Shown piece after piece: positions 189 to 43,316 of a stretch of 64,000 nt of DNA; within the stretch, counting starts at the first letter, position 1; the number at the start of each line of letters is the position of its first letter. Made by a program: the position numbers and the translations under genes. The notes beneath the pieces are model-generated. The model was not told where the DNA came from, did no database searches, and saw only the letters and a list, made by a program, of their open reading frames with translations. The stretch is from sequence record NC_023719.1, one strand, 5' to 3'.

Positions 189-310
189 ACATATACAAAA
201 GGCTAAGATATTATTAATATATCTTAGCTTTGAGCTATAAAAACTGTTTACATAGTATGCAACTTTAGTTATAATATATATATAAGGATTTAATAAGGAG
301 TGGTAAAGAA

Positions 311-1246
311 TTGAATACTACAAACGAAGAATCATTTGATAAATTATTAAGTTTAATAGATGAAGCAACCAACATGCTAGATAGGTTAAAAACAATTAAT
401 GAAACACTTGAAGAGATGCAAGGAAATAGTGAAGTTGGAAGACGAGTACCTTTTGGTATGAATTACACTATGCTTTTTGACGCTATTGATAACTTAGAGG
501 ATTTCTTGAGAATTAAAGGGCAAGTTGAAAAAGCAAAAGAAGACTTTAGTCTAATTGATACTTTTGAAATAGGCGATATTGCTAAAGCTAAAGTTGATAT
601 TAGAATTGGTGGTAGACAAGAAATGCATTATAGTAATGCTCGTTTAGATGTAACTGGATATGTTCGTTATTCAAAGGATAAAACATTTTCTATTATTGAT
701 TTTGATGGTGTTGATTATGTATTAGAAGATTTTACTAACAATTATTTATTATTTGTCGATAAGGGTTTAATGAATACGTTTTTTAATAAAACCGAAGAAA
801 AAGAGACTAGGAGTTTCTTAAGAGTTGATTTTTTATTTACTGGGATTAAGAAGAAGTATTTAAAGAATTTATCTAGTATACGTTTATTTTCAGAAAAAGC
901 TAGAGAGCGTACTAATAATAGTTGGGAATTTGGGCAGAATTATGATGATCAAACTCCTTTAGTTAAATTAACAATCGATGAGACATTTGGTAATATGTGT
1001 TCAGTTTATTTTAATGAGAAGTTAGCTCAAAATTATACTGACTTTATATTATATTTTAATGATATTTTTGCAGTAGGTTTTAGTCAAAGTAAGAGTAATA
1101 AAGATATTTACAAATATAATGGAAAGATTAGTTTTTATACAAAAGAGAAGGGAAAGTATGGAGTTCATTATTTCCCTAAAGATGTTTTGTATGGAACAAC
1201 AAGTGATCGTATTTTAACTTTACTTGAAGTAAAACAATTAAATTAA
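311..1246 (+). CDS. hypothetical protein
   Basis: 311 aa ORF behind promoter and AAGGAGTG RBS. Confidence 0.85.
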   Translation: MNTTNEESFDKLLSLIDEATNMLDRLKTINETLEEMQGNSEVGRRVPFGMNYTMLFDAIDNLEDFLRIKGQVEKAKEDFSLIDTFEIGDIAKAKVDIRIGGRQEMHYSNARLDVTGYVRYSKDKTFSIIDFDGVDYVLEDFTNNYLLFVDKGLMNTFFNKTEEKETRSFLRVDFLFTGIKKKYLKNLSSIRLFSEKARERTNNSWEFGQNYDDQTPLVKLTIDETFGNMCSVYFNEKLAQNYTDFILYFNDIFAVGFSQSKSNKDIYKYNGKISFYTKEKGKYGVHYFPKDVLYGTTSDRILTLLEVKQLN

Positions 1247-1250
1247 AATA

Positions 1251-1472
1251 ATGGAAGGGAGAAAATATATGATTAATACAAGAGATATTGCTTTAGATAT
1301 TCTTATGGGAGAATTAGATACGTCTGATTTAGTGAATGATGTTGAGTTTCTAAAAGAAGTTGATGAGTCTATTTTACTATTAGTTAAGAAAAATAATACT
1401 TGGTCAGATTCTTTTGTTGCTAAGAAGCGTAAAGCAATATTGATTAAAATTGAGAAATTGTCAGAAGGGTGA
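1251..1472 (+). CDS. hypothetical protein
   Basis: ORF in operon; start may be ATG 1269. Confidence 0.7.
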   Translation: MEGRKYMINTRDIALDILMGELDTSDLVNDVEFLKEVDESILLLVKKNNTWSDSFVAKKRKAILIKIEKLSEG

Positions 1473-1478
1473 ATGTAA

Positions 1479-1925
1479 GTGGATGTATTTAAAGAGTTAG
1501 AAGATATTAATAAGAATCTCAAGAAGTTGAGGGATTCAATTTACGAGAACAATGTATTTGAAAAGTCTACTAAATTACAGCAAGATACGTTTTATAGAAT
1601 GTTAAAGGTCTTGATAGATAAAACTATTACTTACATGGATAACTTCAATGATAAAAATCATGTAATTAAGACTAGTGAAGATATTGTTAAAATGCAAAAC
1701 GAATTGAAAAATAGTGAAATAACTTTTTATTTAAATACTTTTCAACAAAAGTTGAGTTGGTATTATGAAAATGATAAGTCTGGAGACAGTTTTATCCCCG
1801 CTTCAGATATGATGATTTTATGGCCATTAAGAGCTATTAATGAAAGAATGTATCGCTACTTATTTAATCAAACTCACGATCATAAGTTTGATAATTTCTT
1901 TAATGAAATAGATGAACAAGTGTAA
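1479..1925 (+). CDS. hypothetical protein
   Basis: ORF in operon; terminator hairpin after. Confidence 0.8.
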   Translation: MDVFKELEDINKNLKKLRDSIYENNVFEKSTKLQQDTFYRMLKVLIDKTITYMDNFNDKNHVIKTSEDIVKMQNELKNSEITFYLNTFQQKLSWYYENDKSGDSFIPASDMMILWPLRAINERMYRYLFNQTHDHKFDNFFNEIDEQV

Positions 1926-1983
1926 TAGATATAAAAACTTCTCTTATTTTGTAGTTAAATACGAATAAGAGAGGTTTTTTATT

Positions 1984-2304
1984 GTGTCTAGACTTAGAAA
2001 ATTAGCAAACTTATCAGAAGAGCTTGGAGAAGAATACTCAACAGCGAGCGGGAAAGTAACTCCTTATCATATATTGTTTAAAGATAATGGTGATGAAATT
2101 GCTTCTATGGATGTGGAAGCCGCTATACAATTTTGTTCTACAAAAATAGATGACTTAAATGAACAATATAAGAGTGACCCAAGTTACTATATGATTATTG
2201 ACCAAGAGAAAGAAGAGTTCTTGCAGTCATTGCGTGATTGTCAAAATGGTATGGATGTAGTATTTACTATTAAAGATTATTTATTAAGAGCAGATGAGAA
2301 GTAA
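1984..2304 (+). CDS. hypothetical protein with MSRLRKLAN leader
   Basis: ORF track; basic leader shared with 13196 and 48597. Confidence 0.75.
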   Translation: MSRLRKLANLSEELGEEYSTASGKVTPYHILFKDNGDEIASMDVEAAIQFCSTKIDDLNEQYKSDPSYYMIIDQEKEEFLQSLRDCQNGMDVVFTIKDYLLRADEK

Positions 2305-2416
2305 GTATTTAAAGTAGAGGGAAATCCTTTACTTTTTCATTTTTTTATGTATAATTCACTATATAGTTGTATATAATGATATTAAATAAGGATTATAAAA
2401 AAATGAAAACGGAGGA

Positions 2417-2839
2417 ATGAAGATTATGAAGATTAAGCCAATTCCATTTAATTACGGTTTGTTAGTAAAGGATTTTCCTGGGACAGAAGTAAAGGTACAA
2501 AGAAAAAATGTAGTAGTTGATAATGACATTATTGGTATGTGGGGAGAAAACATTGATGAAGAAAATCAAATTATGTTACTTACTAATATTTCAGTGAAAC
2601 GCGAGCATTCAAAAAATTCAAAGGAAAACTTAATTAGCCTTTGGGAATCAACTTTTAACCAATATGCAACAGATGAGCAGCCAGAAGAGATTTTAGCTCG
2701 TATTCAAGAAAGACAAGATAAAGAAGCAGAAAGAATGAAGAAGGCTGAGGAAGCTGCAAAGAAAGCAGAAGAAAAAGCTAAAGCGTTAAAAGATCAAATT
2801 GAAAGTAAAGAAAATAAAGCTAAAGAGCAAGTATCTTAA
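2417..2839 (+). CDS. hypothetical protein, C-terminal coiled coil
   Basis: GGAGG RBS; E/K/A-rich tail. Confidence 0.85.
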   Translation: MKIMKIKPIPFNYGLLVKDFPGTEVKVQRKNVVVDNDIIGMWGENIDEENQIMLLTNISVKREHSKNSKENLISLWESTFNQYATDEQPEEILARIQERQDKEAERMKKAEEAAKKAEEKAKALKDQIESKENKAKEQVS

Positions 2840-3087
2840 AGAAGGAGGGTTTCCCCTTCTTTTTTTTTGTTTTTAAAAACAGTTTACAATGTTATTTTAA
2901 TATGATATAATGTCTTTATAAGGTAACATACATAATCTAATAGTTATTTTACTGTTTAAACTTAGGGTTTTTATTTCTAATATTAAATTATAATTTTTAA
3001 AAATCCTTAAAAAACAGTTTACACGAAAAACTATTTATGGTATAATTAATTTATAAGGTAATAAATAAATTAAATATAGAGTAGGGA

Positions 3088-4584
3088 GTGTTGGTATTGG
3101 TATTAATTAAGGAAGAGGAAGTTTTATCCCCAGCAGCAGCTTATGAGTTTTTAACTACTCCTTTTAGTCATCAGGTAGAGAGTTTTAATTATGCTCTTGA
3201 GCATGATAAGTTTTTATTAGGTGACGAGCAAGGATTAGGGAAGACAAAGCAATCTATTGATATGGCAGTATATCGAAAGCAAACTGAAGGAATTAAGCAT
3301 TGTTTAATAGTTTGCGGAGTTAATAGTTCAAAGCGAAACTGGGTAAAAGAAATACACACTCACTCTAATGAGGATGCTTTAATACTTGGTACGAGAGTAG
3401 GGAAAAGAGGAAAACTATATATTGGTGGCTCAGTGGAAACAAGAATTGAGGATTTAGAGGAAGTATTACAAGGTGGAATAAGTCAGTATTTTTTAATTAC
3501 AAACGTAGAGACTTTGAGAAATAAAAAAGTACGTGAGTATTTAAATGACTTGACAGAAGCTGGTATGATTGGCTTTACTATTTTTGACGAAATTCATAGA
3601 GCGAAAAATGCTGAGAGTAAACAGGGAAAAGCTATTCATTGTATTAAATCAAAATACAAAGTAGCCCTTACGGGAACACCGCTTATGAATAACCCTATAG
3701 ATTTATTTAATGTCATGAAGTGGTTAGATGCTTATGAATTTGCATTTTATACTTTCCGTCATAGATATTGTGAAATGGGTGGTAAGGGTGGTCACGCTAT
3801 TGTAGGATACAAAAACCTAAAAGAGCTGCGTGATATGTTCGAAAAAATAATGCTAAGACGTAAGAAAAGTGATGTACTTGATTTACCAGATAAGATTCGC
3901 CAGCTTGAAAGAGTTCAAATGACTCCTAAGCAAGCAATGATTTATAAAGATGTACGTGAGTGTATTATGGCAAATATCCAACAAATAAAGTTGAGTCCTA
4001 ATCCGCTCGCTCAATTAATTCGATTAAGACAAGCTACTGGTTATACAGGTATTTTAAGTGATACTATTCAGGAGTCCGCAAAAATTAATCGTCTAAAAGA
4101 GATGTTGGAAGAAGTAGTTGCAAATGGTCATAAAGCTTTAGTGTTTTCTAACTGGACTTCTATGACTAATGTATTAAAAAGAGAATTAGAAGAGTACAAC
4201 CCAGCTGTGATTACTGGTGAAACAAAGGATGTTGACTTCGAGAAAGAAGTATTCCAAAATGACCCTGATTGTAAGATCGCTATTGGTACAATCGGAGTTA
4301 TGGGGACTGCTCACACATTAACAGAAGCCTCTTATGTTTTCTTTGTAGATAAGCCATGGAACTTCGCAAACGTCGAACAAGCAGAAGATAGAGCTCACCG
4401 TATTGGTACAACGAAGAATGTTACTTGTATTACGTTAGTTTGTGAGAATACTATTGATGAACGCATAGAAGAAATTATATTCAATAAAGCCGAGTTATCA
4501 CAAGGTTTAGTTGAAGGTGACAATGATGTAATTGAAAGACTTAATGTCGATACAGATTCATTAGTAGACCAACTACTTTCTTAA
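3088..4584 (+). CDS. SNF2-family (SF2) helicase/ATPase
   Basis: GDEQGLGKT Walker A, DEIH Walker B, LTGTP motif III, QAEDRAHRIG motif VI. Confidence 0.95.
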   Translation: MLVLVLIKEEEVLSPAAAYEFLTTPFSHQVESFNYALEHDKFLLGDEQGLGKTKQSIDMAVYRKQTEGIKHCLIVCGVNSSKRNWVKEIHTHSNEDALILGTRVGKRGKLYIGGSVETRIEDLEEVLQGGISQYFLITNVETLRNKKVREYLNDLTEAGMIGFTIFDEIHRAKNAESKQGKAIHCIKSKYKVALTGTPLMNNPIDLFNVMKWLDAYEFAFYTFRHRYCEMGGKGGHAIVGYKNLKELRDMFEKIMLRRKKSDVLDLPDKIRQLERVQMTPKQAMIYKDVRECIMANIQQIKLSPNPLAQLIRLRQATGYTGILSDTIQESAKINRLKEMLEEVVANGHKALVFSNWTSMTNVLKRELEEYNPAVITGETKDVDFEKEVFQNDPDCKIAIGTIGVMGTAHTLTEASYVFFVDKPWNFANVEQAEDRAHRIGTTKNVTCITLVCENTIDERIEEIIFNKAELSQGLVEGDNDVIERLNVDTDSLVDQLLS

Positions 4585-4649
4585 TGAAAGTAGTTTTTTG
4601 TTAAATTGACAACACTCTCTATATAGTATTATTATAGAGGTGTTGTTAA

Positions 4650-5282
4650 ATGAAAATATGCGGAATTTATTGTATAAAAAACATTAAAAACAATAAAGTA
4701 TATATTGGAAGTTCATCCAATATGAAATACAGATGGAGTAGACACAAAAGTGATCTAAATTGCAATAGACATGACAATAAACACTTGCAGAATTCGTGGA
4801 ATAAGTATGGTGAGAACAATTTTATATTTATTAGTTTAGAAGAAATTGAAGGAGATAAGTTGACAGAAAGAGAACAATTTTATATAGATAAATATAATTC
4901 TATGGATATTAAGTTTGGGTACAATAAAAGAGAAGCAAGTAATAATGGTTCTCCATCAGAAGAAACAAAAAGAAAGATGAGTATATCTGCTAGAAATAGA
5001 CCTAAGATTTCTGAAGAAACGAAAAAGAAGATAAGTGAAAACAATAAAAAAATGTGGGCATCCGGTAAAATGTCAAATGTAGTAAAAGCAAATAAAGAAA
5101 AACGAGTTTCGCAAGAAACGAGAGATAAAATAAGCAAGTCTTTAATGGGTAGAAAAAGACCACTAGAGGTAGGGAAAAAATCCGGAGATACCCAAAGAGG
5201 TAAAAAATTATCTGAGGAAACAAAGGCAAAAATGAGAGAAGCTCAAAAATTAAGAAGAATGAGAGAGAAAGGTTCTATTTGA
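4650..5282 (+). CDS. GIY-YIG homing endonuclease with NUMOD3-like repeats
   Basis: ICGIYCIKN...VYIGSS, E in EREQFYI, GYN motif; repeated SEETKxKMS/ISxS units. Confidence 0.93.
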   Translation: MKICGIYCIKNIKNNKVYIGSSSNMKYRWSRHKSDLNCNRHDNKHLQNSWNKYGENNFIFISLEEIEGDKLTEREQFYIDKYNSMDIKFGYNKREASNNGSPSEETKRKMSISARNRPKISEETKKKISENNKKMWASGKMSNVVKANKEKRVSQETRDKISKSLMGRKRPLEVGKKSGDTQRGKKLSEETKAKMREAQKLRRMREKGSI

Positions 5283-5327
5283 CCAACTACTAGCTTAACG
5301 GCTAGTAGTTTTTTATTGTCTATAAGT

Positions 5328-9129: not shown

Positions 9130-9170
9130 ATAAAAAAGGATAGGGGTAAAATCCTATCCTTTTTTTTATT

Positions 9171-9245
9171 TCACCAGAGATTGGTTCAGGTGAATCGAAA
9201 TTTCAATTCCAATATAAATATATTATTAAAATTCTCTGGGTTCAT
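9171..9245. repeat. Dispersed inverted-repeat element, copy 2
   Basis: TCACCAGAGATTGGTTCAGGTGAATC identical to 28792-28817. Confidence 0.85.
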
Positions 9246-9328
9246 TTAAAAAAAATATAAAAACGGTTTACAAATGTATAGTAATGGGATATAATATATA
9301 TAAGGAAATAAAATATAGGGGTGTTATA

Positions 9329-9700
9329 ATGAAATACACAGCGGAAGAATTTATTGAAAAATACAATGTAAAACCTGGGGTAGTCGCAGTTTTTAAAAAA
9401 TTCTTGAAAGATAATGGTCTCTTAGGATCAAGAGGTAAATTATCCGAAGAGCATTGTGAATTTTTTATAAAAGCAAAAGAAATAAAAGAAAATCAAAATC
9501 ATACTTGGGTTGATTCATTTGATTTAGCACTAAATACACAAGAAATAAGGGATCAATTTCCAGAAACATCTGATCAAAAACAGGTTCAATCCTCAGCGTT
9601 ATCTGCACAAATAAAAGGAATATTATCATTATATGATGACAATACTCTAGATGAAAAACAAGTAATATTAGTTATAAAGAAATTAGTAGAAGCAGAATAA
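9329..9700 (+). CDS. hypothetical protein, possible N-terminal HTH
   Basis: Track ORF 9284-9700; likely start ATG 9329 after the promoter. Confidence 0.75.
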   Translation: MKYTAEEFIEKYNVKPGVVAVFKKFLKDNGLLGSRGKLSEEHCEFFIKAKEIKENQNHTWVDSFDLALNTQEIRDQFPETSDQKQVQSSALSAQIKGILSLYDDNTLDEKQVILVIKKLVEAE

Positions 9701-9801
9701 ATAAAATTAAGGTTAGGGGTAAAACCCTATCCTTTTTTATTAAAAAACCGTTTACAAAATGATAGTTATATGATATAATAAATATATAAATAAGAAACGG
9801 A

Positions 9802-10131
9802 GTGATATTGGTGGAATTAAGTTATGATTTTTTAGAGGAGAATGTTGTTCAAGTTGAAGTGTTGGATGATTTTAAAATGGGTCCTTGGAGTTGGCATTTT
9901 AAAGAAAAGCCAGTATGTTCACAAATTGTTTTCTGTGGAGATGAACTTATTATTCCTAAAGGAACAGTTGGAATATTTAAACAAAGTTGTAACCATAAAA
10001 TTGGATTGGAATTAGAAAACGATTTTGTGATAGATGTGTTTTTTGAAAATGATGAAGAATTAAATGAATATGTGAAGTTTATAAAAGTTATTGGTCCTAA
10101 TGAAAATTTCATTAGAAAGTCTGATAGATAG
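9802..10131 (+). CDS. hypothetical protein
   Basis: Cassette ORF. Confidence 0.8.
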   Translation: MILVELSYDFLEENVVQVEVLDDFKMGPWSWHFKEKPVCSQIVFCGDELIIPKGTVGIFKQSCNHKIGLELENDFVIDVFFENDEELNEYVKFIKVIGPNENFIRKSDR

Positions 10132-10249
10132 ATAGAAAATAAGGGTAGGAGTAAAATCCTATCCTTTTTTTATTAAAAAACAGTTTACAAATATATAATA
10201 GCGTGATATAATAAATATATAAAGGAATACAAATAAAGGAGAGATAATA

Positions 10250-10624
10250 ATGAGTCAATTAACTGAAGAGCAAATCGAAGAAGTTGTAGAAGCTATATTC
10301 GATATGGTACCAGAAGATCTTTGTGGTATGGGTTATTTTGGTGAAGCAATAAAACACAATGGGTTAGAGCATCTCTTTACAGAAGAACAAATGAACACAT
10401 TTCACGAATGTCAAATAGTGTATGGTCCGTTGGGATCAGATGAAGAAGAAGAAGAAAATGAAGATGAAGATGATGACGGTGAAGACAATGGATGCGATTA
10501 CGAAGTAAGACATAGTTATCCATGGATGAGTGGTAGTTGGTATGACTATGAAGAATCACTTGATGAAAGAATTAAAGAAGAAATAACTACTGTAGTCAAA
10601 GTAGTTATTAAAAATGTTAAATAA
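10250..10624 (+). CDS. acidic hypothetical protein
   Basis: Cassette ORF with D/E tract. Confidence 0.85.
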   Translation: MSQLTEEQIEEVVEAIFDMVPEDLCGMGYFGEAIKHNGLEHLFTEEQMNTFHECQIVYGPLGSDEEEEENEDEDDDGEDNGCDYEVRHSYPWMSGSWYDYEESLDERIKEEITTVVKVVIKNVK

Positions 10625-10661
10625 ATAAAAAGCTGCTTCCTGTATATTAATTATACAGGAG

Positions 10662-10850
10662 GTGATTATAGTGTTAGAGAAGATCAAAAGATTGTTTTTT
10701 AAGCCTATGATAAAAGGTAACATAAAGACAAACGGTGAGAGAGTATATCATGTTCCTGGTGGGCAGCTGTATGATGCAACAAGAGCTGAAAAGATGTTTT
10801 ATACTGAAGAAGAAGCGATCAAAGCTGGATTCCGTAAGTCTAAAAGGTAG
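10662..10850 (+). CDS. small protein resembling the C-terminal IKGN..YHxPG domain of thermonucleases
   Basis: IKGNIKTNGERVYHVPGGQLY...FYTEEEAIKAGFRKSKR. Confidence 0.7.
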   Translation: MIIVLEKIKRLFFKPMIKGNIKTNGERVYHVPGGQLYDATRAEKMFYTEEEAIKAGFRKSKR

Positions 10851-10892
10851 GGGGTTAAACTCCTATCTTTTTTACATAATATATATTAAGAG

Positions 10893-11970: not shown

Positions 11971-12528
11971 TTAGATTACTTCTTTATCTTCAGCTTCTGT
12001 ATTTTCATCTACTGGTTTTCCATCACGTTCACGTAATTCAACTCGGTCGAAGTCAACTGATAGGAAAGTTTTTTGTAGTTCACCAGTAGTTGGATGGATT
12101 AAGTATCCTTTGAAAGCATTTTTCTTCGTACTTGGTTGTTTAACTTGAACTTTACGTCCAATTAAATCTTTACCACTTACGATTTCCACAACATCTCCTT
12201 CTTTGAAGATAAATGCTCCTTCTTCTTCAAACCATTTTTGAGCTTTTGCAACTGTTACTCGGCGGCGTGGTTGGTTTTCACCATTTCCAGAAGTTTCATT
12301 TGTTGTATTTTCTTCAACTTCATCTTGGTACTCTTCAACTACTGGCATTTCAGCTTCACCATTGTTGATTTTAGTAATCATTTGGTTAACTTTTTCAAGT
12401 AAAGTATCTTTTGGAACACCTACGTATGGAATATTTAATCCTTTTGCTTTTTCAGCGATATCACGGTAACCCGCATCCTTCGGTAAAAGTTCCATTGCTA
12501 CCACTTCTGTGTTTTGAATTGTTTCCAT
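11971..12528 (-). CDS. paralog family A protein (N-terminal helical domain + KW(F/Y)EEEG + SH3/KOW-like domain)
   Basis: Clear homology to 33083 and 40972; start ATG 12528 after GGAGG. Confidence 0.9.
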   Translation of the reverse strand: METIQNTEVVAMELLPKDAGYRDIAEKAKGLNIPYVGVPKDTLLEKVNQMITKINNGEAEMPVVEEYQDEVEENTTNETSGNGENQPRRRVTVAKAQKWFEEEGAFIFKEGDVVEIVSGKDLIGRKVQVKQPSTKKNAFKGYLIHPTTGELQKTFLSVDFDRVELRERDGKPVDENTEAEDKEVI

Positions 12529-12733
12529 TTTCAATTCCTCCAATGTTTTATTATATTTTTATTATACCACATAAGGTCCATTTTGTAAATACCTTTTTTA
12601 AAAATTTTTAGGGATTTTTTAAATTTGGTATTTACCTTCCTTCCTTATGATTTAATAATATCACATTATATAGTAATTGTAAACTATTTTTTATGGTTTT
12701 TTTAGTAATGTTACTATATAATAGGAAAGAATA

Positions 12734-12958
12734 TTATTGAGCGCTTTTCTTTTCGTTAATACGATCAATAATTTCTTGTTTTCTTAAGCCCGTGTAATCA
12801 ATGCCTAGTTTGTGAGCTTCTCTAGCGACATCTTCAAAACTTACGTATTCAGAAATCTTTTGTTTGATTTCTTCAATACTTAATCCTTTACAATTAATAT
12901 AACATTTTTTTGCTTTTTCAATCCAGACTTTTCTTTCTTCTCGTTTAGTTAGTGTCAT
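12734..12958 (-). CDS. small protein with the family A N-terminal domain
   Basis: AHKLGIDYTGLRKQEIIDRIN matches AKELGIKYVGVKKEVIIENIN. Confidence 0.8.
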   Translation of the reverse strand: MTLTKREERKVWIEKAKKCYINCKGLSIEEIKQKISEYVSFEDVAREAHKLGIDYTGLRKQEIIDRINEKKSAQ

Positions 12959-13035
12959 TATCCCACTCCTTTTTATATTATGGATTAATTATATCACAAA
13001 AACTAGTCATTGTAAACTGTTTTTATAAAAAAATC

Positions 13036-13112
13036 ATTCCCTCAGGGTTGGTTCTGGTGAATCGAAATTTCCTTGGTAATATGATTATAAATACCAATTA
13101 TTCTCAGGGCAC
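13036..13112. repeat. Dispersed inverted-repeat element, copy 4
   Basis: CCCTCAGGGTTGGTTCTGGTGAATCGAAATTT. Confidence 0.8.
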
Positions 13113-13948: not shown

Positions 13949-14305
13949 ATGGATATTACAATGGAAAAGTTTAATAGAGATAAACATAACTTTCCTGGTG
14001 AAAATATCGAGCCAAGTCATGTCTTCTATGATGGGGATAAAATTGTTGGTAGAGCTAAGTTAGTTGTTTGTGAAACAGAAGTTTATATTGCTACTATAAC
14101 TGCAGAAGTAAAAGGCTTAGGGTATGGAAAAAAAATGATTGAACTTATTAAACAAAAATATAATAACTTTGATTTATTAACTGGTGATACTACCCCTAAA
14201 GCTAGAGGATTTTGGGAGAAAATGGGTGCAATTATAGACGAGACTTATGAAGATTTTTTCTATATTCAAATTGATCCAGATAAAAATATTAAGCCTATTT
14301 TTTAA
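13949..14305 (+). CDS. GNAT-family acetyltransferase
   Basis: VYIATITAEVKGLGYGKKMIE (motif A); KARGFWEKMG. Confidence 0.8.
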   Translation: MDITMEKFNRDKHNFPGENIEPSHVFYDGDKIVGRAKLVVCETEVYIATITAEVKGLGYGKKMIELIKQKYNNFDLLTGDTTPKARGFWEKMGAIIDETYEDFFYIQIDPDKNIKPIF

Positions 14306-15039: not shown

Positions 15040-15360
15040 ATGAATCAAAGAGCAGCAAAAAGAGAAATGGACAATTTAATGGGAATTTCAGAAGAGATGG
15101 ATAATAGGTTTAATTCTAAAGAGTTAACTCCTCAATTGAGAAAAGAGTTATTTCAGTATATAAAGAACTTAATATCCAATGTTGGAATGGTACGAGAAGA
15201 TAAAGATAAAACAATTCAACTTTGGGTAAGTCAATCTTATAAAGATTACAAGATGGCTCCTGATATCGTAATTTATGAAGAAAAAGGTTGTGTATTTATT
15301 CATGATGAAATTCTTTGGAAAACAATTTCAGGGTTAAATGAAGTCGTAAGAGGGGATTAA
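15040..15360 (+). CDS. hypothetical protein
   Basis: Cassette ORF (track 15031; ATG 15040). Confidence 0.8.
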   Translation: MNQRAAKREMDNLMGISEEMDNRFNSKELTPQLRKELFQYIKNLISNVGMVREDKDKTIQLWVSQSYKDYKMAPDIVIYEEKGCVFIHDEILWKTISGLNEVVRGD

Positions 15361-15435
15361 TTCCTCTCTTTTTTTTAAAAACAGTTTACATAATGCTAGT
15401 TATGTGATATAATAAATATATAAATAAGGAATGGA

Positions 15436-16161
15436 GTGATAGGGATGGCTACTAATGGAGTTTATGGTTTTAGAAAGAACGGAGTAGAAAAGTTGAATTA
15501 TCAGCATGGTGATGCTTATTTGGAATGCTTAGGTAGAGAAATACTGCAATTTATTAAGTTAGTAGAAACAAAGAGAATGATTAGTTGCTTTGACAACATA
15601 GAGATGAAAGAGGGTAATTCAGATTTTGAATATGTAGATTTAGGTCTTTACGTTACTGGTGAAGAAACCTCTATGATCAATGGTGATAAGTATTATGCAG
15701 ATTATAAGTATATATTAGATTTGGATAAAAAAGTATTAGAATATAAATGTCCAGGTGGCGTTTTTGAAATTAGTTTTAAATTTATTAAAAGCAATAAAAT
15801 CGATTCTATAATGGAATTTATTGAAGTTGAAGAATTAAAAAAGAAATTTGATTCTCTAGAGTTGGAAAAACTTATTAGTAAAGCATTAAAAGATAAAAAC
15901 AACTTTTTCGTTTTAGAGATTGATAGATGTAATGATTTTGATTTTACAAGTCGTTATTCTGAAGATTTCTGTCAAGAGTGCAATCACATTGACAATGATA
16001 TTGACGAAGAAGATATTAGTGAAGATACTAAGTACATTCTTCTCTGGGATGTTGGTCGTCAAAATATTACCATTGACACTTTAGATCCTAAAATTAAAGC
16101 TGTAGTTGAGAAAGTAGAAAGAAAACATGACATTAAAATACAATCATTAAATATTTTTTAA
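15436..16161 (+). CDS. hypothetical protein
   Basis: Cassette ORF; GVYGFRKNG...HGDAYLECLG. Confidence 0.85.
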   Translation: MIGMATNGVYGFRKNGVEKLNYQHGDAYLECLGREILQFIKLVETKRMISCFDNIEMKEGNSDFEYVDLGLYVTGEETSMINGDKYYADYKYILDLDKKVLEYKCPGGVFEISFKFIKSNKIDSIMEFIEVEELKKKFDSLELEKLISKALKDKNNFFVLEIDRCNDFDFTSRYSEDFCQECNHIDNDIDEEDISEDTKYILLWDVGRQNITIDTLDPKIKAVVEKVERKHDIKIQSLNIF

Positions 16162-18549: not shown

Positions 18550-18680
18550 TTTACATAATATTATGACTATGATATAATTTATACAATAATAGTACATTAA
18601 ATTATAATTATTTGAATCACTGTAGTTCATTCTCAGTGATTTTATTTAAAATATAAATATATTTATTGAGAGGATGAAAA

Positions 18681-19016: not shown

Positions 19017-19019
19017 TAT

Positions 19020-19690
19020 GTTCCACTTGCTTAGCAAGTTCCACAGAGAGGTTATCCAACCTCTCGCCTTCTCTCTTTTCTTTTGCTTCTTTTTTTTGAT
19101 CTCTTCTTTGATCTCAAGATGTACTTAACACTTCTTCAGGTAGGCAAGCTTGAAGTGTAGAAGTGGACACACTTCTATCCCCCTGACAGTAGAAAACACT
19201 CAAGAAATACGAGAGAGCACACTACTATCTAAAAGGGGAGATCACTTAACTCTTCTTCAGTATAGGCTAAGAATTTCGTGCCGTAGCGTATCTTTTGCAA
19301 GACTCTTCCAGGTCTGTCGTTACAGAGTATGTTATTTCTAATATTTGGCTACGTTCCCTCACTTGCAGCTTAATTATGAATCCAACAGTTTCCAGTGGTA
19401 ATTAAGAAGCATCACAGGACGGTTAACTAACATGGTGAGTGTTAGTTGCTTCTGGAAATGATTGACGTTCCCCATCTAACGGACCATCTATGGACTGGTA
19501 TCACCATTCACTATTACCATGAGTTTATCCATAGGTGGTCACTATCCACTACTCCTCAGTTGACGGCTGAACAGGTTTTGTAAAGTATCTTTTAGATCAA
19601 CTTCATTGTTAAGAGTTTAGATACTTAGCTACAATCGTTATTACACACAAAAACCCTTACTAACAACGTACGCTAGTAAGGGTTTTCTAC
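19020..19690 (+). ncRNA. candidate large, highly structured ncRNA
   Basis: No credible ORF; GC-richer; many 6-13 bp stems; G-U pairs favour plus strand; terminator 19650-19690. Confidence 0.7.
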
Positions 19691-19694
19691 TTTG

Positions 19695-19875
19695 CAAATT
19701 TGCTCACTAAAAATTTAAATATCTTTTAAGATATTGTTATAAAATGAGTGCCACTTTCATATAATGTATATGAAAGAGCTTTGGAAAATAGAAAACAACT
19801 AGTACCAGTAGTTGTTATTCTAGTTATTGAGATGCTGTCAACATTTCAATAACCCAAGTTCTTTTTTATTTTGAA
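19695..19875 (+). ncRNA. tandem hairpin array downstream of the large RNA
   Basis: Back-to-back stems such as CTTTCATATA/TATATGAAAG, AACAACTA/TAGTTGTT, GTTATTGA/TCAATAAC. Confidence 0.5.
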
Positions 19876-20055
19876 CTTAACGAGTATTATGTATTTTTTT
19901 ATCTTTACGTTTATTGAATACAAGTTGTTTTATGCAATATAACCATTTTTACATACTTATTTACAAAGACAACTAAAATTTATTTAAAAAACAGTTTACA
20001 AACTATGCATATCGTGATATAATTAAATTATAAATAAGGAACGGAGTGACGTAAA

Positions 20056-22039: not shown

Positions 22040-22558
22040 ATGGAATTTACTATTGAAGTAGAAAATGTTGAACAATTAGGGTTAAATAAAACTAAAAGGA
22101 ATTATTTAATATTTGCTTTTATAAATAATGAAAAAGTTGGATATTTACGTTTTGAAGATCAAACAAATTGTGACTTATCTTTTTATGGTGGAGAAGATAA
22201 AGTAGTAAGTAGAATTATTTATTTAGCTATGGTAAATGTTCACCCTAATCACAAACAAAAAGGTATAGGTATGGAATTATATAAAGAGTTTGGTAAGTAT
22301 TACAAGCAAAACTTTAATGGTGTACCTGTACTTCACTTGTTTAATAATTCAATTGCGGATTATATGTTCCGTAAGTCTGTTGCAAGTGATGATATTCCAA
22401 TAGAAGCATATAATGAAGAGTATTTTTATAAAGATGATATGAGTGAGGAAAACAATATTAATTGGAGAAACTTAAGAGAAAAACTTCCAAAACAATTCCA
22501 AGGAAGCGCAATAGATTGGGATTATGAAGCTCTTTATGGAGAAGAAGTAGAGGGGTAA
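22040..22558 (+). CDS. GNAT-family acetyltransferase, homolog of the repeats in 50887
   Basis: VGYLRF, VNVHPNHKQKGIGMELYKEFG, FNNSIADYMFRK. Confidence 0.8.
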   Translation: MEFTIEVENVEQLGLNKTKRNYLIFAFINNEKVGYLRFEDQTNCDLSFYGGEDKVVSRIIYLAMVNVHPNHKQKGIGMELYKEFGKYYKQNFNGVPVLHLFNNSIADYMFRKSVASDDIPIEAYNEEYFYKDDMSEENNINWRNLREKLPKQFQGSAIDWDYEALYGEEVEG

Positions 22559-22648
22559 ATCCCTCTCTTTTTTTTTTATAAAAACAGTTTACATAATGCT
22601 AGTTATGTGATATAATAAATATATAAATAAGGAATGGAGTGGTTTTAA

Positions 22649-28773: not shown

Positions 28774-28790
28774 AAGGAGTCTTTTTTTAT

Positions 28791-28862
28791 GTCACCAGAG
28801 ATTGGTTCAGGTGAATCAAAATTTATTAAATAATATATATCTATTATTCGTTGTTTCTGAAA
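28791..28862. repeat. Dispersed inverted-repeat element, copy 9
   Basis: 26 bp identical to 9171-9196. Confidence 0.85.
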
Positions 28863-32861: not shown

Positions 32862-33082
32862 AAAGTTTAAAAAAATTAAAAAAAGTTACAAAAAACAGTT
32901 TACATTACACAGAAATAGGATAAAATATAATTATATAAGGCACCAGGTACTAACTAAGAATAAAAATGAAAGGAGAGAAAAAGTTAAAAAAAATTAAAAT
33001 AAGGTATTTACAATACCAAGAAAACATGGTATAATAAAATTATAAATAAAAATAAAACAAAAACAAATTGGAGGAATGAAAA

Positions 33083-35661: not shown

Positions 35662-36201
35662 TCATGAAGAGACTTCTTTTGCTATATAATTTTCTTTTTT
35701 GATATAGAAAATTAAGTGAGTATCTTCTATTTTACCTTTATAGAACTCTCTTAACTCAGTATCTTCTGCAAAACTCATTTGTTTAATGTAAGAAATCTTA
35801 TTACAAGCCGCTATAGATCTTTCATTGTGTTTTCTAACAAGTAGGTAAATTGTATCAAGATGCGGTAGCGCAAATAGCTCATCAAAGAATAATTGTTTAG
35901 CTATTTGATTATATCCTCTTCCCCAGTGATTTTCCCCAATGACAGTAGCAAGAAACCCTTCTTGTCTAAAGAATGAATAGTCCCATAAGATAATTAGTCC
36001 AACTACGATATCCTCTTCGTTGATAATAACTCTAGGAATAACTCTTAATTCGTTTTCTTCGTTTTGTAAATACTTAATCATTTCTCCCATTTCCTCTACA
36101 GAGGTGGGTTTTAAACGAGAATACCTTGAGACGCAAGGATTAGAAAGATGGGAATAGAGAATAGCAGCATCGGATAGTTGAACTTGACGTAATGTCGTCA
36201 T
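35662..36201 (-). CDS. RimJ/RimL-like GNAT acetyltransferase
   Basis: LRQVQLSDA, HWGRGYNQ, HNERSIAA; ATG 36201 after GAGGTG. Confidence 0.85.
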   Translation of the reverse strand: MTTLRQVQLSDAAILYSHLSNPCVSRYSRLKPTSVEEMGEMIKYLQNEENELRVIPRVIINEEDIVVGLIILWDYSFFRQEGFLATVIGENHWGRGYNQIAKQLFFDELFALPHLDTIYLLVRKHNERSIAACNKISYIKQMSFAEDTELREFYKGKIEDTHLIFYIKKENYIAKEVSS

Positions 36202-36465
36202 AATTATCACCTCACGCCTCTGACTTAAAGTCACGAGTTATTTTATTTTTATCAACACATTTCTTGACGTAATAGTATATATGAAAAAAACAAAAAAATA
36301 ATAACAACCATTTGCGTCATTTTGTATGATATAATTTTATTATATAATGATATTAAATCATTTTTTTGACTTTGTAAATAGATTCTCCAAAATTATTTTT
36401 TATTTAAAAAACTATTTACAAATTAATGAATACATGATATAATAAATATATAAATAAGGAATGGA

Positions 36466-37186: not shown

Positions 37187-37582
37187 GTGTTTTATATGTT
37201 AGCTATTGAAAGTTTTGCAGGGTTAAAAGGGATAATGGAAAAAGACTCTGGTGAAAGTTTAGATATGTATGAACATTGGGATCGTTTATTTATCAATGGT
37301 CAAGAAACAGAATTGATGTTACGATTCTTCAATCATACAAGTACATTAGTAATTGCTCGTATCAAAGTAAAAAATCGACGTACTGGTGTAGCCACTTCTA
37401 TTCTTGATTGGCTGAAAGAATACGCTAAACAAAACAAAATCGCTAACATTGCACTAGAAAGTACAACTACTCATGAGATCAATGCGTTTGCTGAAAAGCA
37501 TGGTTTTGAGAAAATCGAACAACAAGGGATGTACTATGAAGGAGTATTTTTTGGCAACTGGAATTTATCCTTAAATAATTGA
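37187..37582 (+). CDS. GNAT-family acetyltransferase
   Basis: VIARIKVKNRRTGVATSILDWL; NAFAEKHGF. Confidence 0.8.
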   Translation: MFYMLAIESFAGLKGIMEKDSGESLDMYEHWDRLFINGQETELMLRFFNHTSTLVIARIKVKNRRTGVATSILDWLKEYAKQNKIANIALESTTTHEINAFAEKHGFEKIEQQGMYYEGVFFGNWNLSLNN

Positions 37583-38065: not shown

Positions 38066-38118
38066 ATTTAAAAAATATGTACTTTCTTTCTATAATTAAA
38101 ATAGAAAGGAGGGAAACC

Positions 38119-39318
38119 ATGAAACGTTCTAAATTAATTAGGATTTCTAAAAATAATAGTAAATATAAATTAATAGATTCTTTATCTTTAAAATCTAAAA
38201 ACTTGTATAATTACGCTAATTATTTAATTAGACAAGAGTTTATTTTAAATGGGAAATGGATAAGATATAATGAATTAAATAAAAGATTAAAAGAAGAAAT
38301 AGTATATAAAGAATTACCAATCCAAACATCTCAACAAACACTCATGTTATTGGATAAAAATTGGAAATCTTACTTTAACTCGATAAAAGATTGGTCTAAA
38401 AATAAAAGTAAATATTCAGGCAAACCAAAACTACCTAAGTATAAAAAGAAAGATGGGAGATTTAATGTAGTTTTTACTAATCAACAAGCAAAACATAAAA
38501 ATGGGATTATTAAAATTTGTCCAGCAAGTTTGGATCTTATTTTTAATATCAATATTGAAAACAAAATAAAACAAATTCAAATAATACCTAAAAATAATTT
38601 TTATCAATTGGAAATAATCTATGAAATTGATAAAAAAGAAGTGGAATTAAATGACGAATTATATTGTGGGATTGATTTAGGAATTAATAATCTTATAACT
38701 TTAACAGATAACCTGCATAATAATCCAATTGTTATCAATGGTAAAATTATTAAGTCTATAAATCAATATTACAATAAGAAAAGAGCCGAAATACAATCTA
38801 CTTTACTAATAAAAAATAAAAAAACTTGGTCAAATAAGCTAACTCAATTAACTGAAAAAAGAAATAATAAAATAAAAGATTATATGCATAAGAGTTCTAG
38901 ATATATAATTAATTATTGCTTATCTAATAAGATAAAAACAATAGTGATTGGATATAATCAAAATTGGAAAGAAAGACTTATTGTCTCAAAACAACAAAAT
39001 CAAAATTTCTTTCAAATTCCTTATTTAACTTTAATTGAAATGATACAATATAAAGCTGAAGAATATGATATAGATGTTATACTAACTGAAGAATCTTATA
39101 CTTCCAAAGCTAGTTTTTTAGATTTAGATGAGATGGAAAAAGATTTTAAATTTAATGGAGAAAGAATAAAAAGAGGATTGTATAAGACTAATAATGGTAT
39201 TTTAATAAATGCTGATGTAAACGGTTCTTATAATATAATTAGAAAAGTAGCTCCAAATGTTTTTACAGATGGAGTAGAGGGTGTAAAGTTACATCCATTG
39301 AAAATTAATTTTTCATAA
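38119..39318 (+). mobile_element. tnpB: solo TnpB (IS200/IS605 family, IS1341-like) RNA-guided nuclease
   Basis: GIDLGINN (RuvC-I), IVIGYN, TEESYTSK, NADVNGSYNI (RuvC-III), GVEGVKLHP tail; no tnpA nearby; ATG 38119 after AAGGAGG. Confidence 0.9.
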
Positions 39319-39431
39319 ACTTATAACTAGGAACTCCGATTGTATCATAATATAGATGATGTAAAGATACCTTTAATGGTATCTTTTTTATTTGTCTTCT
39401 ATCTCTATAACCTAATAGTTTACTATGGTAA

Positions 39432-39552
39432 ACACATACGCTCGCGCGTGTGTATATGTACTACACGTATGCATCTGTGCATCTATGTGCTCGTATATAC
39501 GTATGTGCATGTATACGCGCTTGCTATATATATACTTACGTACATGTATATG
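39432..39552. repeat. alternating purine-pyrimidine tract
   Basis: ACACATACGCTCGCGCGTGTGTATATGTAC...TACATGTATATG. Confidence 0.85.
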
Positions 39553-39979
39553 ACGAACTATGATAAAACAATTCAATAATTCTGTTAAGTACATAAAAGT
39601 AGAATCATAAGAGAAAATGAGACTTCAAAATTAGATAAGGAATATTTCATTTTGATAATAAATCTTAAATCAATCAACAATCATAACTCAGATGAAATCA
39701 GAAGATTAAATAATAATCTTTCTATATTGAGTATTAGAATATTTTATTCAAAATAATACGATTATTCTATCATAAAAATCTAATTTTGAAAACACATAAT
39801 AGATAAAGGTTGTAATCGCAAGTGTAATAAGAAAATAGAGTAATGCTTAATGGAAGAAACAAATTGATTTAGTAATGATATTAGCAATTGTTTTTAAAAT
39901 ATTGTTTACATAATTCGATAATTATGTTATAATGAATATATAAGGAAATGGTATATATATGAAGGGAGTAGTTTAAATA

Positions 39980-40294
39980 ATGGCAAAATCAAATAATCCA
40001 AGATATTTAAAACAGTATATGGGAGTTACAGAAGGTAGTTTTATGGGAAGAGACGATGGATATCCTGAAACAAAGAATGTAGTCTTTGATGATCTTGAGT
40101 CTTTGTCTCCCCAATTTGGAACGAAGAAAGATGAAAAGTATTATCAGCTGATTCCAATTGATATTAAAACTCTTGAAGGGGAAGTAAATGAAATAAAAGA
40201 GCTTCAAGATAAAGAGAAAAAAGAAGCTAAAAAGAAATCAATCGATGATCAAATCGCTAAGTTGCAAGCTCAAAGAGAATTATTAGAAGATTAA
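39980..40294 (+). CDS. hypothetical protein, C-terminal coiled coil
   Basis: Cassette ORF. Confidence 0.85.
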   Translation: MAKSNNPRYLKQYMGVTEGSFMGRDDGYPETKNVVFDDLESLSPQFGTKKDEKYYQLIPIDIKTLEGEVNEIKELQDKEKKEAKKKSIDDQIAKLQAQRELLED

Positions 40295-40971
40295 TAATCA
40301 TGATAAATTAATTAGCTACTAACTTTAAATTAGTAGCTTTTTTATATTTGTATTATTTTATATATTATAAGTAGTTACTCTATAGTTTGATTAAATATAG
40401 TATATTACATTAACTAACATTTGTAAATAGTTTTTTGATTATAAATAAAGAAAATGATAATCACTAGATGATTGCTGAGGATGACCCAGTTTTTATTAGA
40501 TATATATTTATATATCTCAAATAATCTCTGAACACAAAACTATTTTTATAAAAACAATTTACATAGCAATAAAGATGTCATATAATAAATAGATTTAAAA
40601 TGAAATAGAACTGGTTAAGAGATCATTACATTATTACGGGAGTTAAGTTGAGTTAAATTTGATTTGATAAACATATGAGAGAAACCGCCGATAAGATAAG
40701 TGTGAGTATATTATCTATAAGCACAAGTAAAGGATTAAACTCACTTAAATAATTTATTTAAAAAAAATTAAAAAACCATTTACAAATACAAAGTTATGTG
40801 ATATTATTAATATATAAGGTAATACAAATTCAAACCTTATAAAAATTATATCCTAAAAAATTAAAAAATTTTAAAAAAACTATTTACAAATACCAAGTAA
40901 TAGGATATAATAAATATATAAGGTAAGGAATTAAAAAAACCTTATAAAAAAAACTTAAGGAGTGTTCAATT

Positions 40972-41415
40972 ATGAAAAAAGTAAACATGGAAACTAAATT
41001 CAACGTGGTAAAGGAAATGGCTAATGAATTAGGAATTAAATATGTAGGAGTTAAAAAGGAAGTTATCATTGAAAATATCAATAACAAAATTGATGAAATC
41101 GAGGCTTCAAAATCTCAGGAATCACAAGAAACACCAAAGGAAACTAAAAAAGCTGGGAAATGGTATGAACAAGAAGGAGCATTTCCATACACAGAAGGGA
41201 CTCTAATGATTATTACAAATCACCCTAACAAAGCAATTGTTGGAAGAATGGTGGAAGTATCTGGACCATCAACAAAAAGAAATGCAGTTAAATGTTTCCT
41301 AATAAGTGGAAAGAATGGACAAAAACAAAAAACTCACCTATCTCTAGATTTCGATATGGTCACTGAACATACTCCACAATATCCAGCATTAATTCCTTCA
41401 ATCATCACAGCATAA
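40972..41415 (+). CDS. paralog family A protein
   Basis: ELGIKYVGVKK, KWYEQEGAF, VSGPSTKRN. Confidence 0.9.
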   Translation: MKKVNMETKFNVVKEMANELGIKYVGVKKEVIIENINNKIDEIEASKSQESQETPKETKKAGKWYEQEGAFPYTEGTLMIITNHPNKAIVGRMVEVSGPSTKRNAVKCFLISGKNGQKQKTHLSLDFDMVTEHTPQYPALIPSIITA

Positions 41416-41543
41416 TCAAACAGGGAGGTCCCTCCTCCCTCTCTTTATCTTTAAAATAACTTATAAAAACGGTTTACATATTTAAAGTAATGTGATATAA
41501 TTAATCTATAAGGTAATACAAATACCTTAATAAAAACTTAGGA

Positions 41544-41924
41544 GTGGTTAATATGAGATATCAAAGTTCTTTCTTAAGAGAAACAGGTAAAAATACAACG
41601 CTTGTATTCGAAAATGAAGCAATGGAAATTCTCTGGAAAAAAGAATTAGTTGGACAAATATCTGACGGGTATTGGGAAAATACTCAAAATAGTGGCTGGC
41701 AATTCTGGTGCAACGTAAATACAACTGTCGGAAGTGAAAACAAATTAATTGGTAAAATCCCTTATGACATCAAACGGAATTTTGGATTCACAAGATTAAT
41801 TCCTTACGTTGGTGATAGAATGGTCGAAGTAATTCAAGGAGTTCACCCTGGAGCTACAGAAAAAGATGTTAGGAAATACCTACAATTAATTTCAAAAACA
41901 CTTAAGGGTGACAAGAGGGATTAA
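41544..41924 (+). CDS. hypothetical protein
   Basis: Cassette ORF; GQISDGYWEN. Confidence 0.85.
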   Translation: MVNMRYQSSFLRETGKNTTLVFENEAMEILWKKELVGQISDGYWENTQNSGWQFWCNVNTTVGSENKLIGKIPYDIKRNFGFTRLIPYVGDRMVEVIQGVHPGATEKDVRKYLQLISKTLKGDKRD

Positions 41925-42047
41925 TCTCCCTCTCTTTCTTTCTATAAAAAGTTTATAAAAACAGTTTACAAATACTCAAAACTAGGATATAATAAATATA
42001 TAAGGTAAGGAATTACTTTACCTAATAAAATCTAAGGAGTGTTTTAA

Positions 42048-42401
42048 ATGAATTTAACAGAAAAGTTAATAAAAGGTTTTGATTTCCACCAAGCAAATTA
42101 TAATTTAACTTGCGATGGTAAATACGAGTTAGACCAATCAAACACTATCGACTTGCGATTTGGTAACTTAGAAGAAGACGGATTCAAAGTGCTTATATCA
42201 GTTTTCGTAATCGACGGGTCACTCAGTAAAATTATTGTATCGGACTATAGTAATTATATAGAAACAAGAGAACAAAACATCTTAGAGGATTTCCTGTACC
42301 ACACGGGCTACTTCATGGACTTCCTTCATGAATCACAAGACAAGCTAGAAGATAAATTGGAAAAAAGCTACGTAGGTAAATTAAAACCAAAGGGGAAATA
42401 A
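42048..42401 (+). CDS. hypothetical protein
   Basis: Cassette ORF. Confidence 0.85.
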   Translation: MNLTEKLIKGFDFHQANYNLTCDGKYELDQSNTIDLRFGNLEEDGFKVLISVFVIDGSLSKIIVSDYSNYIETREQNILEDFLYHTGYFMDFLHESQDKLEDKLEKSYVGKLKPKGK

Positions 42402-42510
42402 TTCCCCTCTCTTTTTTAAAAACTTTATAAAAACCGTTTACAAATACTCAAAACTAGGATATAATAAATATATAAGGTAAGGAATTACTTTATAAAAATA
42501 AAATTTAGGA

Positions 42511-42813
42511 GTGTTTCATATGACAAAAACAATTCAAATTGGTACAGAGGCTACAGGAAGATATTGGTCAGATTGTATCCCGTTAGAAGTAATCGAAATG
42601 ACAGCTTCAGGTAAAACAATTACACTAAGAGAACTAGACGCAGAACCTGCTGAAGGTTACGATTACTTCTCCAATCAAGTCCATACCTTCTCATCAAACC
42701 CAGAAAACAGAATTTTCAAAGCAAGATTCCGCAAACATGGCGGCTGGACTTCATCTTGTGGGTTAAGCATTTCATTCGGAACGGCAAGAAAATACACAGA
42801 CCCACAATACTAA
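42511..42813 (+). CDS. hypothetical protein
   Basis: Cassette ORF. Confidence 0.85.
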   Translation: MFHMTKTIQIGTEATGRYWSDCIPLEVIEMTASGKTITLRELDAEPAEGYDYFSNQVHTFSSNPENRIFKARFRKHGGWTSSCGLSISFGTARKYTDPQY

Positions 42814-43316
42814 GAGAGGGATTCCCTCTCTTTTCTTTCTAACAAGTTCATAAAACAGTTTACATATTAAAATTAATGTGATATAATCTATATATAAGGT
42901 AATAACAATACTTAATAAAGGAGAATAAAAATTAAATAAACGGTTTACAAATACCCAGCTGTATGTTATAATAAATATATAAGGTAATAGAGAGTTCCTC
43001 TGTCTGTAAAAGTGATTAGAAATAACCCAGAGGGCCCTCTGAGCGTGGGCAGATCCCTCTCGAATCACGGGTATATTTTTAGGTTGCGTTTTGACACTTC
43101 TACTGGTTTGATTGTTAGTGTATAAAGGGGGTATATGTGTTGTCTGATATACAATTGGCATCTATTCTGATAATAGGGGTAATAACCATTTGGGCAATTA
43201 TAGAGCACTATCTGACACATTAGGGGTGTTTCCAGAGGGGAAAGTGGGGATAGTAAAAAAATTCTCGGGAGTATTTTTAAGGCAAAAATTAACACTTCAA
43301 AGGGGAGAAATAGATA

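Follow-up and report, generated by a model that had tools for sequence, protein, structure and literature searches.

In this study, we analysed the last 64 kb of the genome of Bacillus phage G (JN638751 / NC_023719, 497,513 bp), a stretch of 64,000 nucleotides that is referred to here as the window and that matches record positions 433,514–497,513 at 100 % identity. Phage G belongs to the genus Donellivirus and is a megaphage of approximately 0.5 Mb with a Gram-positive host; to our knowledge no other phage of about half a megabase has been cultivated. For two thirds of the phage G genes no function is known, and the genes annotated in the window, gp588–gp673, are nearly all without an assigned function. 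Between positions 247 and 42,972 (coordinates are those of the window unless given as record positions) lies an array on the plus strand, gp589–gp668, in which approximately 55 promoters of one family accompany small genes, and it is this promoter-cassette array that is described here. The phage G record starts at an artificial point, the true terminal repeat being only 127 bp long (PMC12484599), and therefore the array is internal to the phage genome.

Results

The exact pattern TTTACA-N16–18-TATAAT is found 53 times in the window (51 times on the plus and twice on the minus strand) against 0.37 occurrences expected, and all of these sites fall within 247–42,972. Genome-wide, 112 such promoters are present (104 on the plus and 8 on the minus strand), and they are concentrated at record 380–477 kb. 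An earlier note on this DNA had placed the array at 247–43000; this describes the promoters of the window correctly, but the family begins at about record 380 kb, which is 53 kb upstream of the window, and the first part of the interval (247–4,584) is conserved rather than variable. The full array comprises approximately 90 promoters across 97 kb and more than 80 genes, and we consider it likely, as part of the explanation discussed below, that the window holds the downstream 43 kb of a ~97-kb early-gene region made up of self-contained expression cassettes. The form TTGACA-N16–18-TATAAT does not occur at all in the 497-kb genome, though the TTGACA hexamer alone is present 110 times, and G at the third position of the −35 element seems to be avoided in phage G promoters.

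Alignment of the 99 promoter sites with a 17-bp spacer gave a consensus with, in its 5′ part, a T-run, an A-tract, c-a-G, TTTACA and a spacer that is nearly uninformative at positions 8–17, and, in its 3′ part, T-a/g-T-G-A, TATAAT, five A/T bases, TATAA (in 90–99 of the 99 sites) and then G/A. A full junction between two genes starts with an intrinsic terminator (G-rich stem and T-tract), followed by an A-tract UP element, TTTACA, a 17-bp spacer ending in TRTG-n, which constitutes an extended −10, and TATAAT; after the −10 come five bases, a near-invariant TATAA(G/A) box at the predicted start site and a short leader with ATAAGG and GGAGTG, a strong Shine-Dalgarno sequence, which leads into the small gene. 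The junction at 15348–15444 on the plus strand is typical: the terminator spans 15348–15370 and is followed by the A-tract, the −35 element at 15385, TGn-TATAAT up to 15413, the TATAA box, ATAAGG and the GGAGTG ribosome-binding site (RBS), and gp614 starts at 15445. GGAGTG is found 35 times before 43 kb and twice after it. Candidate roles of the start-site box, which reads TATAA(G/A)G / ATAAGG, are the optimization of start site or promoter escape, a 5′ stabilizer, a site for a global shut-off factor and a sigma-dependent pause. A 5′-terminal hairpin (AAGGTA...TACCTT) was also considered as the general cause of this box; it fits only about 6 of 32 class-B leaders and none of the leaders of a distant relative when read by eye, and was dropped as a general explanation.

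It had been claimed in the earlier note that nearly every small gene has the same junction. While the junction family is real, its distribution is narrower: among the 76 annotated plus-strand genes of the window, 34 are preceded by both terminator and promoter, 17 by a promoter only, 7 by a terminator only and 18 by neither, so that 51 of the 76 bear a promoter. In 34 of these 51 promoter-bearing junctions a GC stem with a T-tract lies no more than about 60 nt upstream, and the stem-loop is always located upstream of the A-tract. Per 20 kb, 38, 34 and 24 terminator-like sites were counted where 5.2, 4.0 and 4.7 are expected, a five- to eightfold excess over chance. The recurrence of one terminator type could be confirmed at 9132, 9705, 10137 and 10841 (9132–10875, plus strand); these four terminators of the GGATAGGGG...CCTATCC family are 71–91 % identical and stand behind the unrelated genes gp601, gp602, gp603 and gp605. 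The GC hairpin that had been described at the junctions is in fact a looser family of G-rich stems, of which the 17-mer GAGGGATTAATTCCCTC is a representative that occurs in its exact form once only. No known RNA family was detected in the window at the Rfam gathering threshold. In addition, a conserved 43-nt element with a TTCACC...GGTGAA hairpin was seen at 9161–9203, at 28782–28824 and, inverted, at 13028–13070, directly 3′ of terminators and 5′ of promoters.

The genes of the array have a median length of 115 aa and are mostly ORFans without homologues; gp614 has a single distant relative, and a search of IMG/VR returned no close relatives of gp665. Host-directed functions are represented by RsfA-like, SpoVK-like and GNAT proteins. 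Some paralogue families are found in or near the array, namely gp627/gp629, gp636/gp638, gp608/gp652/gp665 and a seven-member family at record 404–418 kb.

Some junctions are much more alike than the consensus demands. The promoter-leader module at 15376–15438 (flanked by gp613/614) and that at 22579–22641 (flanked by gp628/629), both on the plus strand, are, as had been reported, identical over all 63 bp, and the identity breaks off sharply on both sides; from the family's own column frequencies such an identical 63-mer pair is expected 5e-12 times. Similarly, the plus-strand junctions upstream (41940–42051) and downstream (42412–42523) of gp667 form a direct repeat around this single gene and are 88 % identical over 112 nt, and in their cores (41952–42020 and 42424–42492) the single difference in 69 positions (68/69 identical) noted before was found again. 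The genes that flank these near-identical junctions (gp613/614 versus gp628/629, and gp666/667/668) show no similarity to each other even at E-values of up to 10, which indicates that the copied unit is the promoter-leader module alone and not a gene together with its promoter.

As the spacer is unconstrained, it served to trace the ancestry of junctions. In a set of 78 promoters, 10 pairs agree in 15 or more of the 17 spacer bases, where shuffling of the columns gives 0.68 such pairs (at most 5 across 500 shuffles), and two pairs are identical at 17/17, against 0 expected. Across junction pairs, spacer and leader identity are nearly uncorrelated (rho 0.04), and leaders identical at 25/25 occur with unrelated spacers; this low correlation fits either crossovers inside the junctions or independent selection on the leader. 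Most of the similarity between junctions is functional constraint, shared with the diverged relatives described below, and not evidence of mobility; nevertheless, a subset of the promoter-leader modules (~50–110 bp) are recent copies placed between unrelated genes.

A close relative of phage G is present in the soil metagenome SRR26888022, from which seven contigs (~16.6 kb aligned, 88–99.96 % identical to phage G) were compared. Three contigs are collinear with phage G at 99.4–99.96 %, and the remaining ones show six structural differences. In one contig (L120) the gp666 cassette ORF (41553–41924, plus strand) is replaced by an unrelated ORF of 78 aa between conserved junctions: homology of 96 % runs through gp665, the terminator, promoter and leader to the RBS, and from the A-tract of the following junction onwards the sequences are homologous again. 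The contig that bears gp666 in the same sample has a depth of 2.3 compared with 7.3–9.7 for its neighbours, and it therefore seems that both forms coexist in the soil sample. In another contig (L165) the minus-strand cassette of gp609 (12732–13016; promoter 12988–13016, ORF 12734–12958), including the promoter spacer, is replaced by another version of the promoter, an ORF of 148 aa and a terminator. The third difference concerns the atypical junction at 18550–18680 (plus strand), which represents a deletion scar: the relative carries a canonical leader and an ORF of 63 aa behind this promoter, and in phage G this cassette is deleted from just past the −10. Since the deletion starts there, promoter 18550 is among the few that have no TATAA box. 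A second ORF of 63 aa, between gp619 and gp620, is likewise deleted in phage G with a 3′ remnant left behind; this deletion is internal to an operon and not at a junction. The last two differences are an insertion sequence of the TnpB type that is present in phage G and absent from the relative, and a minus-strand ORF of 70 aa found in the relative only. Breakpoints thus lie in junctions in two replacements and one deletion of the six differences, a sample that at ~16.6 kb is too small for a statistic.

More distant relatives could be found through the promoter pattern itself. A scan of IMG/VR identified UViG_3300042923_001459, which has 68 family promoters on one strand within 40 kb, and 66 of these give the same A-tract, TTTACA, TGTGA-TATAAT and TATAAGGTAAT box at the start site. 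Megaphage contigs of up to 476 kb, of the rumen type and others, are likewise retrieved by the pattern and show the same consensus; those large rumen contigs that the class-B pattern had revealed were compared as fragments, and the class-A leader pattern had no match in JGI metagenome contigs. The conserved proteins of these megaphages are only ~25–90 % identical to those of phage G (the range measured for the IMG/VR relative), and yet the consensus, including the box at +1, is unchanged; it is therefore held by selection. In the IMG/VR relative, 29 promoter pairs agree in at least 15 of 17 spacer bases, against 1.45 expected, and such pairs are enriched among adjacent junctions (p = 0.0005); these adjacent pairs have an identical promoter module with unrelated sequence up- and downstream, and they flank single genes. 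As a side observation, a repeat analogous to the 43-nt element (GATTCAC...GAGATCAATT) is found in this relative just upstream of several promoters, where a terminator would stand.

While the consensus is kept in these phages, the order of the genes is not. Downstream of its array, the IMG/VR relative has a block that is collinear with record 483–497 kb of phage G (mostly 50–88 % aa identity, some 23–39 %), and within the array only about 9 of about 100 ORFs have phage G homologues, in scrambled order (homologues at 466.6, 474.5, 445.5 on the opposite strand, 454.8, 142.4, 474.5, 474.5 and 443.8 kb of the record). On a 3-kb contig (L121), genes resembling gp648, gp644 and gp665 adjoin in an order unlike that of phage G, and two further contigs (L122 and L118, with 8 and 13 family promoters) are likewise scrambled. 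In rumen-type contigs the regions corresponding to record 381–395 kb and 424–437 kb are collinear, the latter including window 247–4,584, and the array proper is scrambled. The sub-block at 247–4584 on the plus strand, which runs from gp589 to the helicase gp594 and has a few family promoters, is collinear in two contigs (L136 and L148) at 25–59 % aa identity and is not hyperplastic. By comparison of these genomes, the rest of the region is to be regarded as hyperplastic, with cassettes gained, lost, replaced and reordered between neighbouring blocks that stay collinear.

Discussion

The system that the array resembles most is that of the promoter-early stem-loop (PeSL) cassettes which T4-like phages carry in their hyperplastic regions (Arbiol et al. 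2010, PMC2839356; Comeau et al. 2014, PMC4122927). In both cases approximately 50 or more strong sigma-70-type promoters per genome, with an AT-rich upstream element and joined to a terminator stem-loop, stand before small ORFans and are concentrated in variable regions while core blocks are conserved, and close relatives differ by the insertion, deletion or replacement of cassettes at the motifs in T4-like phages and, in three of the six differences from the soil relative, in phage G; even the −35 sequence TTTAC is that of the T4/PST pair. The differences are that phage G is not a T4-like myovirus but a Donellivirus, so that the resemblance is one of kind and not of descent, that its stem-loop is always upstream of the A-tract and never inside or overlapping the promoter, and that it has the additional near-invariant TATAA(G/A)G box at +1 as well as a conserved leader and RBS. 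Its scale is also larger, with the ~90 predicted promoters over 97 kb. The likeness to PeSL elements proposed in the earlier note has thus survived, with replacements bounded by junctions in a near-identical soil relative, and so has the idea of a reshuffled accessory gene bank, since gene order is scrambled in relatives instead of conserved and some junctions resemble each other far more closely than the promoter consensus predicts.

Overall, the best explanation of these data, and one that we hold to be quite probable, is an early-gene array of promoter cassettes that is shuffled as in the PeSL model. Host sigma-A RNA polymerase would read the promoters right after infection, as suggested by their form and by the example of T4, and the terminators would insulate the cassettes from upstream transcription. 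Shuffling would be driven by homologous recombination or gene conversion between the repeated modules, carried out by the phage's own recombination machinery and with no integrase involved; phage G encodes a UvsX/RecA-like recombinase (PMC12484599). Under the PeSL model gp667, located between near-identical direct repeats, is a predicted substrate for mini-circle formation. Recombination between junctions, as had been proposed before, remains the inferred mechanism, and several of the differences do not run from junction to junction.

Several points weigh against this explanation. Three of the six differences from the close relative (the operon-internal deletion, the TnpB insertion and the minus-strand ORF indel) are not bounded by junctions, and where breakpoints fall at ORF edges, selection for intact genes could be part of the reason. 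Two strains may be present in the soil sample, in which case differences in identity from contig to contig are not clean evidence of mosaicism. In phage G itself, adjacent junctions exceed distant ones in similarity only slightly. Recombination intermediates, that is a circle or a deletion junction, were not seen in the read data, which consist of assembled contigs in which joints at repeats are ambiguous; apparent joints between junctions in the contigs were set aside as evidence of recombination, as they have short sides and fall on repeated sequence. Finally, start sites, timing and sigma factor are all predictions, and the three phage sigma-70-like factors together with the complete absence of TTGACA promoters could point to a non-host specificity.

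Some of these points feed into other explanations. The junctions might be alike only by independent selection for a maximal promoter, leader and RBS, with turnover due to illegitimate recombination and selection and with no role for the repeats. This would be in agreement with the retention of the same junction consensus in diverged relatives, with the near absence of correlation between spacers and leaders (rho 0.04, with 25/25 leaders next to unrelated spacers) and with the three of six differences that are not junction-bounded. It leaves unaccounted for that the spacer is nearly uninformative and yet matches at 17/17 and 15–16/17 far above the column-shuffle null, that an identical 63-mer pair is expected 5e-12 times, and that two replacements in the close relative start and end inside or at junction sequence, and we regard it as unlikely. 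We also think it quite unlikely that the promoters are read by a phage-encoded factor of the sigma-70 family, which would make the array a middle-gene region of otherwise the same cassette architecture. As a sigma-A/sigma-70 promoter, the combination of TTTACA, TRTG-n-TATAAT and an A-tract UP element is a good one. Unmodified host sigma-70 polymerase reads the early promoters of T4, whose −35 is the same TTTAC. The T4 early consensus is TTTACW-N17-TAYWAT (PMC4122927; for the definition of PeSLs see PMC2839356 and PMC4122927), and small ORFans accompanied by host-directed genes (RsfA-like, SpoVK-like, GNAT) are typical of early takeover regions. What speaks for a phage factor is that the sigma-A optimum TTGACA is used by 0 of the 112 sites, that the +1 box is conserved beyond the known needs of sigma-A, and that phage G encodes three sigma-70-like factors (PMC12484599).

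Growth of the array by tandem duplication of a gene with its junction, after which the genes diverged past recognition and the junctions were conserved, would explain the paralogue families in and near the array (gp627/gp629, gp636/gp638, gp608/gp652/gp665 and the family of seven at record 404–418 kb). This alternative is very improbable and was rejected, because the genes beside near-identical junctions show no similarity up to an E-value of 10 while the unconstrained spacer bases are identical; moreover, the paralogues gp608, gp652 and gp665 are dispersed and do not stand behind the most similar junctions. The earlier note called the array integron-like. Judged by the sequence, practically no credence can be given to an integron-like system, in which cassettes would be inserted and excised at structured sites by a site-specific recombinase. 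Phage G shares with integron arrays many small, mostly unrelated genes of the same orientation between repeated, hairpin-containing elements, a likeness that is superficial: there is no integrase, no attI/attC and no single common promoter, and repeat-mediated exchange would be general homologous recombination. A tyrosine recombinase (PF00589) was not found in the whole 497-kb genome, whereas 14 of 14 control genomes score; the hairpins are GC stems with T-tracts, which makes them terminators instead of attC sites, the cassettes for the most part have promoters of their own (51 of 76 genes), and the only mobile-element gene is the TnpB insertion, which is absent from the close relative.

The array of proposed early cassettes can also be compared with SPO1's host-takeover module, which comprises a terminal region of 12.4 kb with 26 genes (Stewart et al. 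1998, as cited in PMC6873191). As far as that secondary account goes, the two are alike in being sets of small genes of a Bacillus phage, early in SPO1 and presumably so in phage G, with promoters and RBSs of the kind seen in very highly expressed genes and with many short operons (PMC6873191). In contrast, the phage G array has more than 80 genes and is internal, and with a terminal repeat of 127 bp it lies outside any long terminal redundancy. The evidence for shuffling is specific to phage G, and no protein homology to SPO1 was seen, though no search aimed at SPO1 was made.

It is tempting to go one step further, and we do so only tentatively, as the following proposal is more doubtful than probable. 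The promoter-leader module, from the A-tract to about +12 (50–110 bp), might be the working unit of an integrase-free exchange of cassettes throughout the clade of G-like megaphages, and genes between identical modules might arise from, or serve as substrates for, the excision of circles and their re-insertion among co-infecting phages; such traffic would have helped these genomes to reach half a megabase. At +1, the invariant TATAAGGTAAT box might then be a dedicated cis-element, for example for a global early shut-off factor or for mRNA stabilization, rather than a simple start-site preference.

PeSLs have so far been described only for T4-like phages, and the phage G array is a well-supported extension to a clade of megaphages of Gram-positive hosts, to which it adds evidence of single-cassette swaps in a natural population. 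A multi-omics study of phage G published in 2025 predicted 2,852 promoters generically and did not describe the TTTACA family (PMC12484599). The approximately 110 near-identical promoters provide a map of probable early transcription units, they correct gene starts such as that of gp602 (see below), and the array shows which 40 kb of the phage G genome are evolutionarily fluid. In addition, the promoter module is a compact expression unit for Bacillus-type hosts, its great strength and its insulation being predicted from sequence.

Other features of the window

The annotated start of gp602 (9284) falls within the promoter at 9267–9295 and is probably wrong. In a 99.6 % identical soil contig the gene call starts at the position corresponding to 9330 (123 aa versus 138 aa), which fits the promoter-leader-RBS layout.

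A further minus-strand cassette, that of gp608 (11971–12589), has a family promoter at 12561–12589, and gp608 is a paralogue of gp652 and gp665. Four genes for GNAT-type acetyltransferases are located in the array, at 13949–14305, 22040–22558, 35662–36210 (minus strand) and 37196–37582; gp628 and gp657 were assigned by Pfam, and gp611 and gp660 by annotation. gp628 also resembles the N-terminal part of gp676 (50887–52500) and a gene at record 388 kb.

At several places two or three promoters follow each other in tandem with no ORF between them. Such 'empty cassettes', which may be left over from cassette loss or give rise to short RNAs, are found at 2883–3046, 32899–33035, 40558–40911 and 42859–42972. 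That at 40558–40911 (plus strand) has three successive promoters (40558, 40779 and 40883), and the tandem pair at 42859–42972 (plus strand) is the last of the array, which ends there before the collinear conserved block.

The insertion sequence mentioned above corresponds to gp662 (~38070–39410), a TnpB-type protein with OrfB_IS605 and Cas12f-like TNB domains. The element adjoins a terminator hairpin and is missing from the otherwise 94–96 % identical soil contig (L124), and its insertion in the lineage of phage G is therefore recent. What is annotated as gp663 may be the RNA or the right end of this element and not a gene.

Within the array a gap of ~1 kb at 19017–20055 has no ORF of more than 63 aa, a higher GC content and a reversed skew. 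Its minus strand folds with z = −4.4 and gives a sub-threshold match to the Rfam EGFOA RNA at 19281–19440 (32.7 bits against a gathering threshold of 37.7, E = 4.5e-4), and the part present in a soil contig (up to 19463) is 94 % identical. EGFOA RNAs have been reported to live in unusually large gene-free intergenic regions (bioRxiv 10.64898/2026.07.01.735769).

Outside the array, at 49963–50341 and upstream of gp676, iteron-like direct repeats with units of the TAATAGATAGAA type are found in a region of ~0.9 kb that has no plus-strand ORF of 50 aa or more; these repeats could be an origin or a regulatory region.

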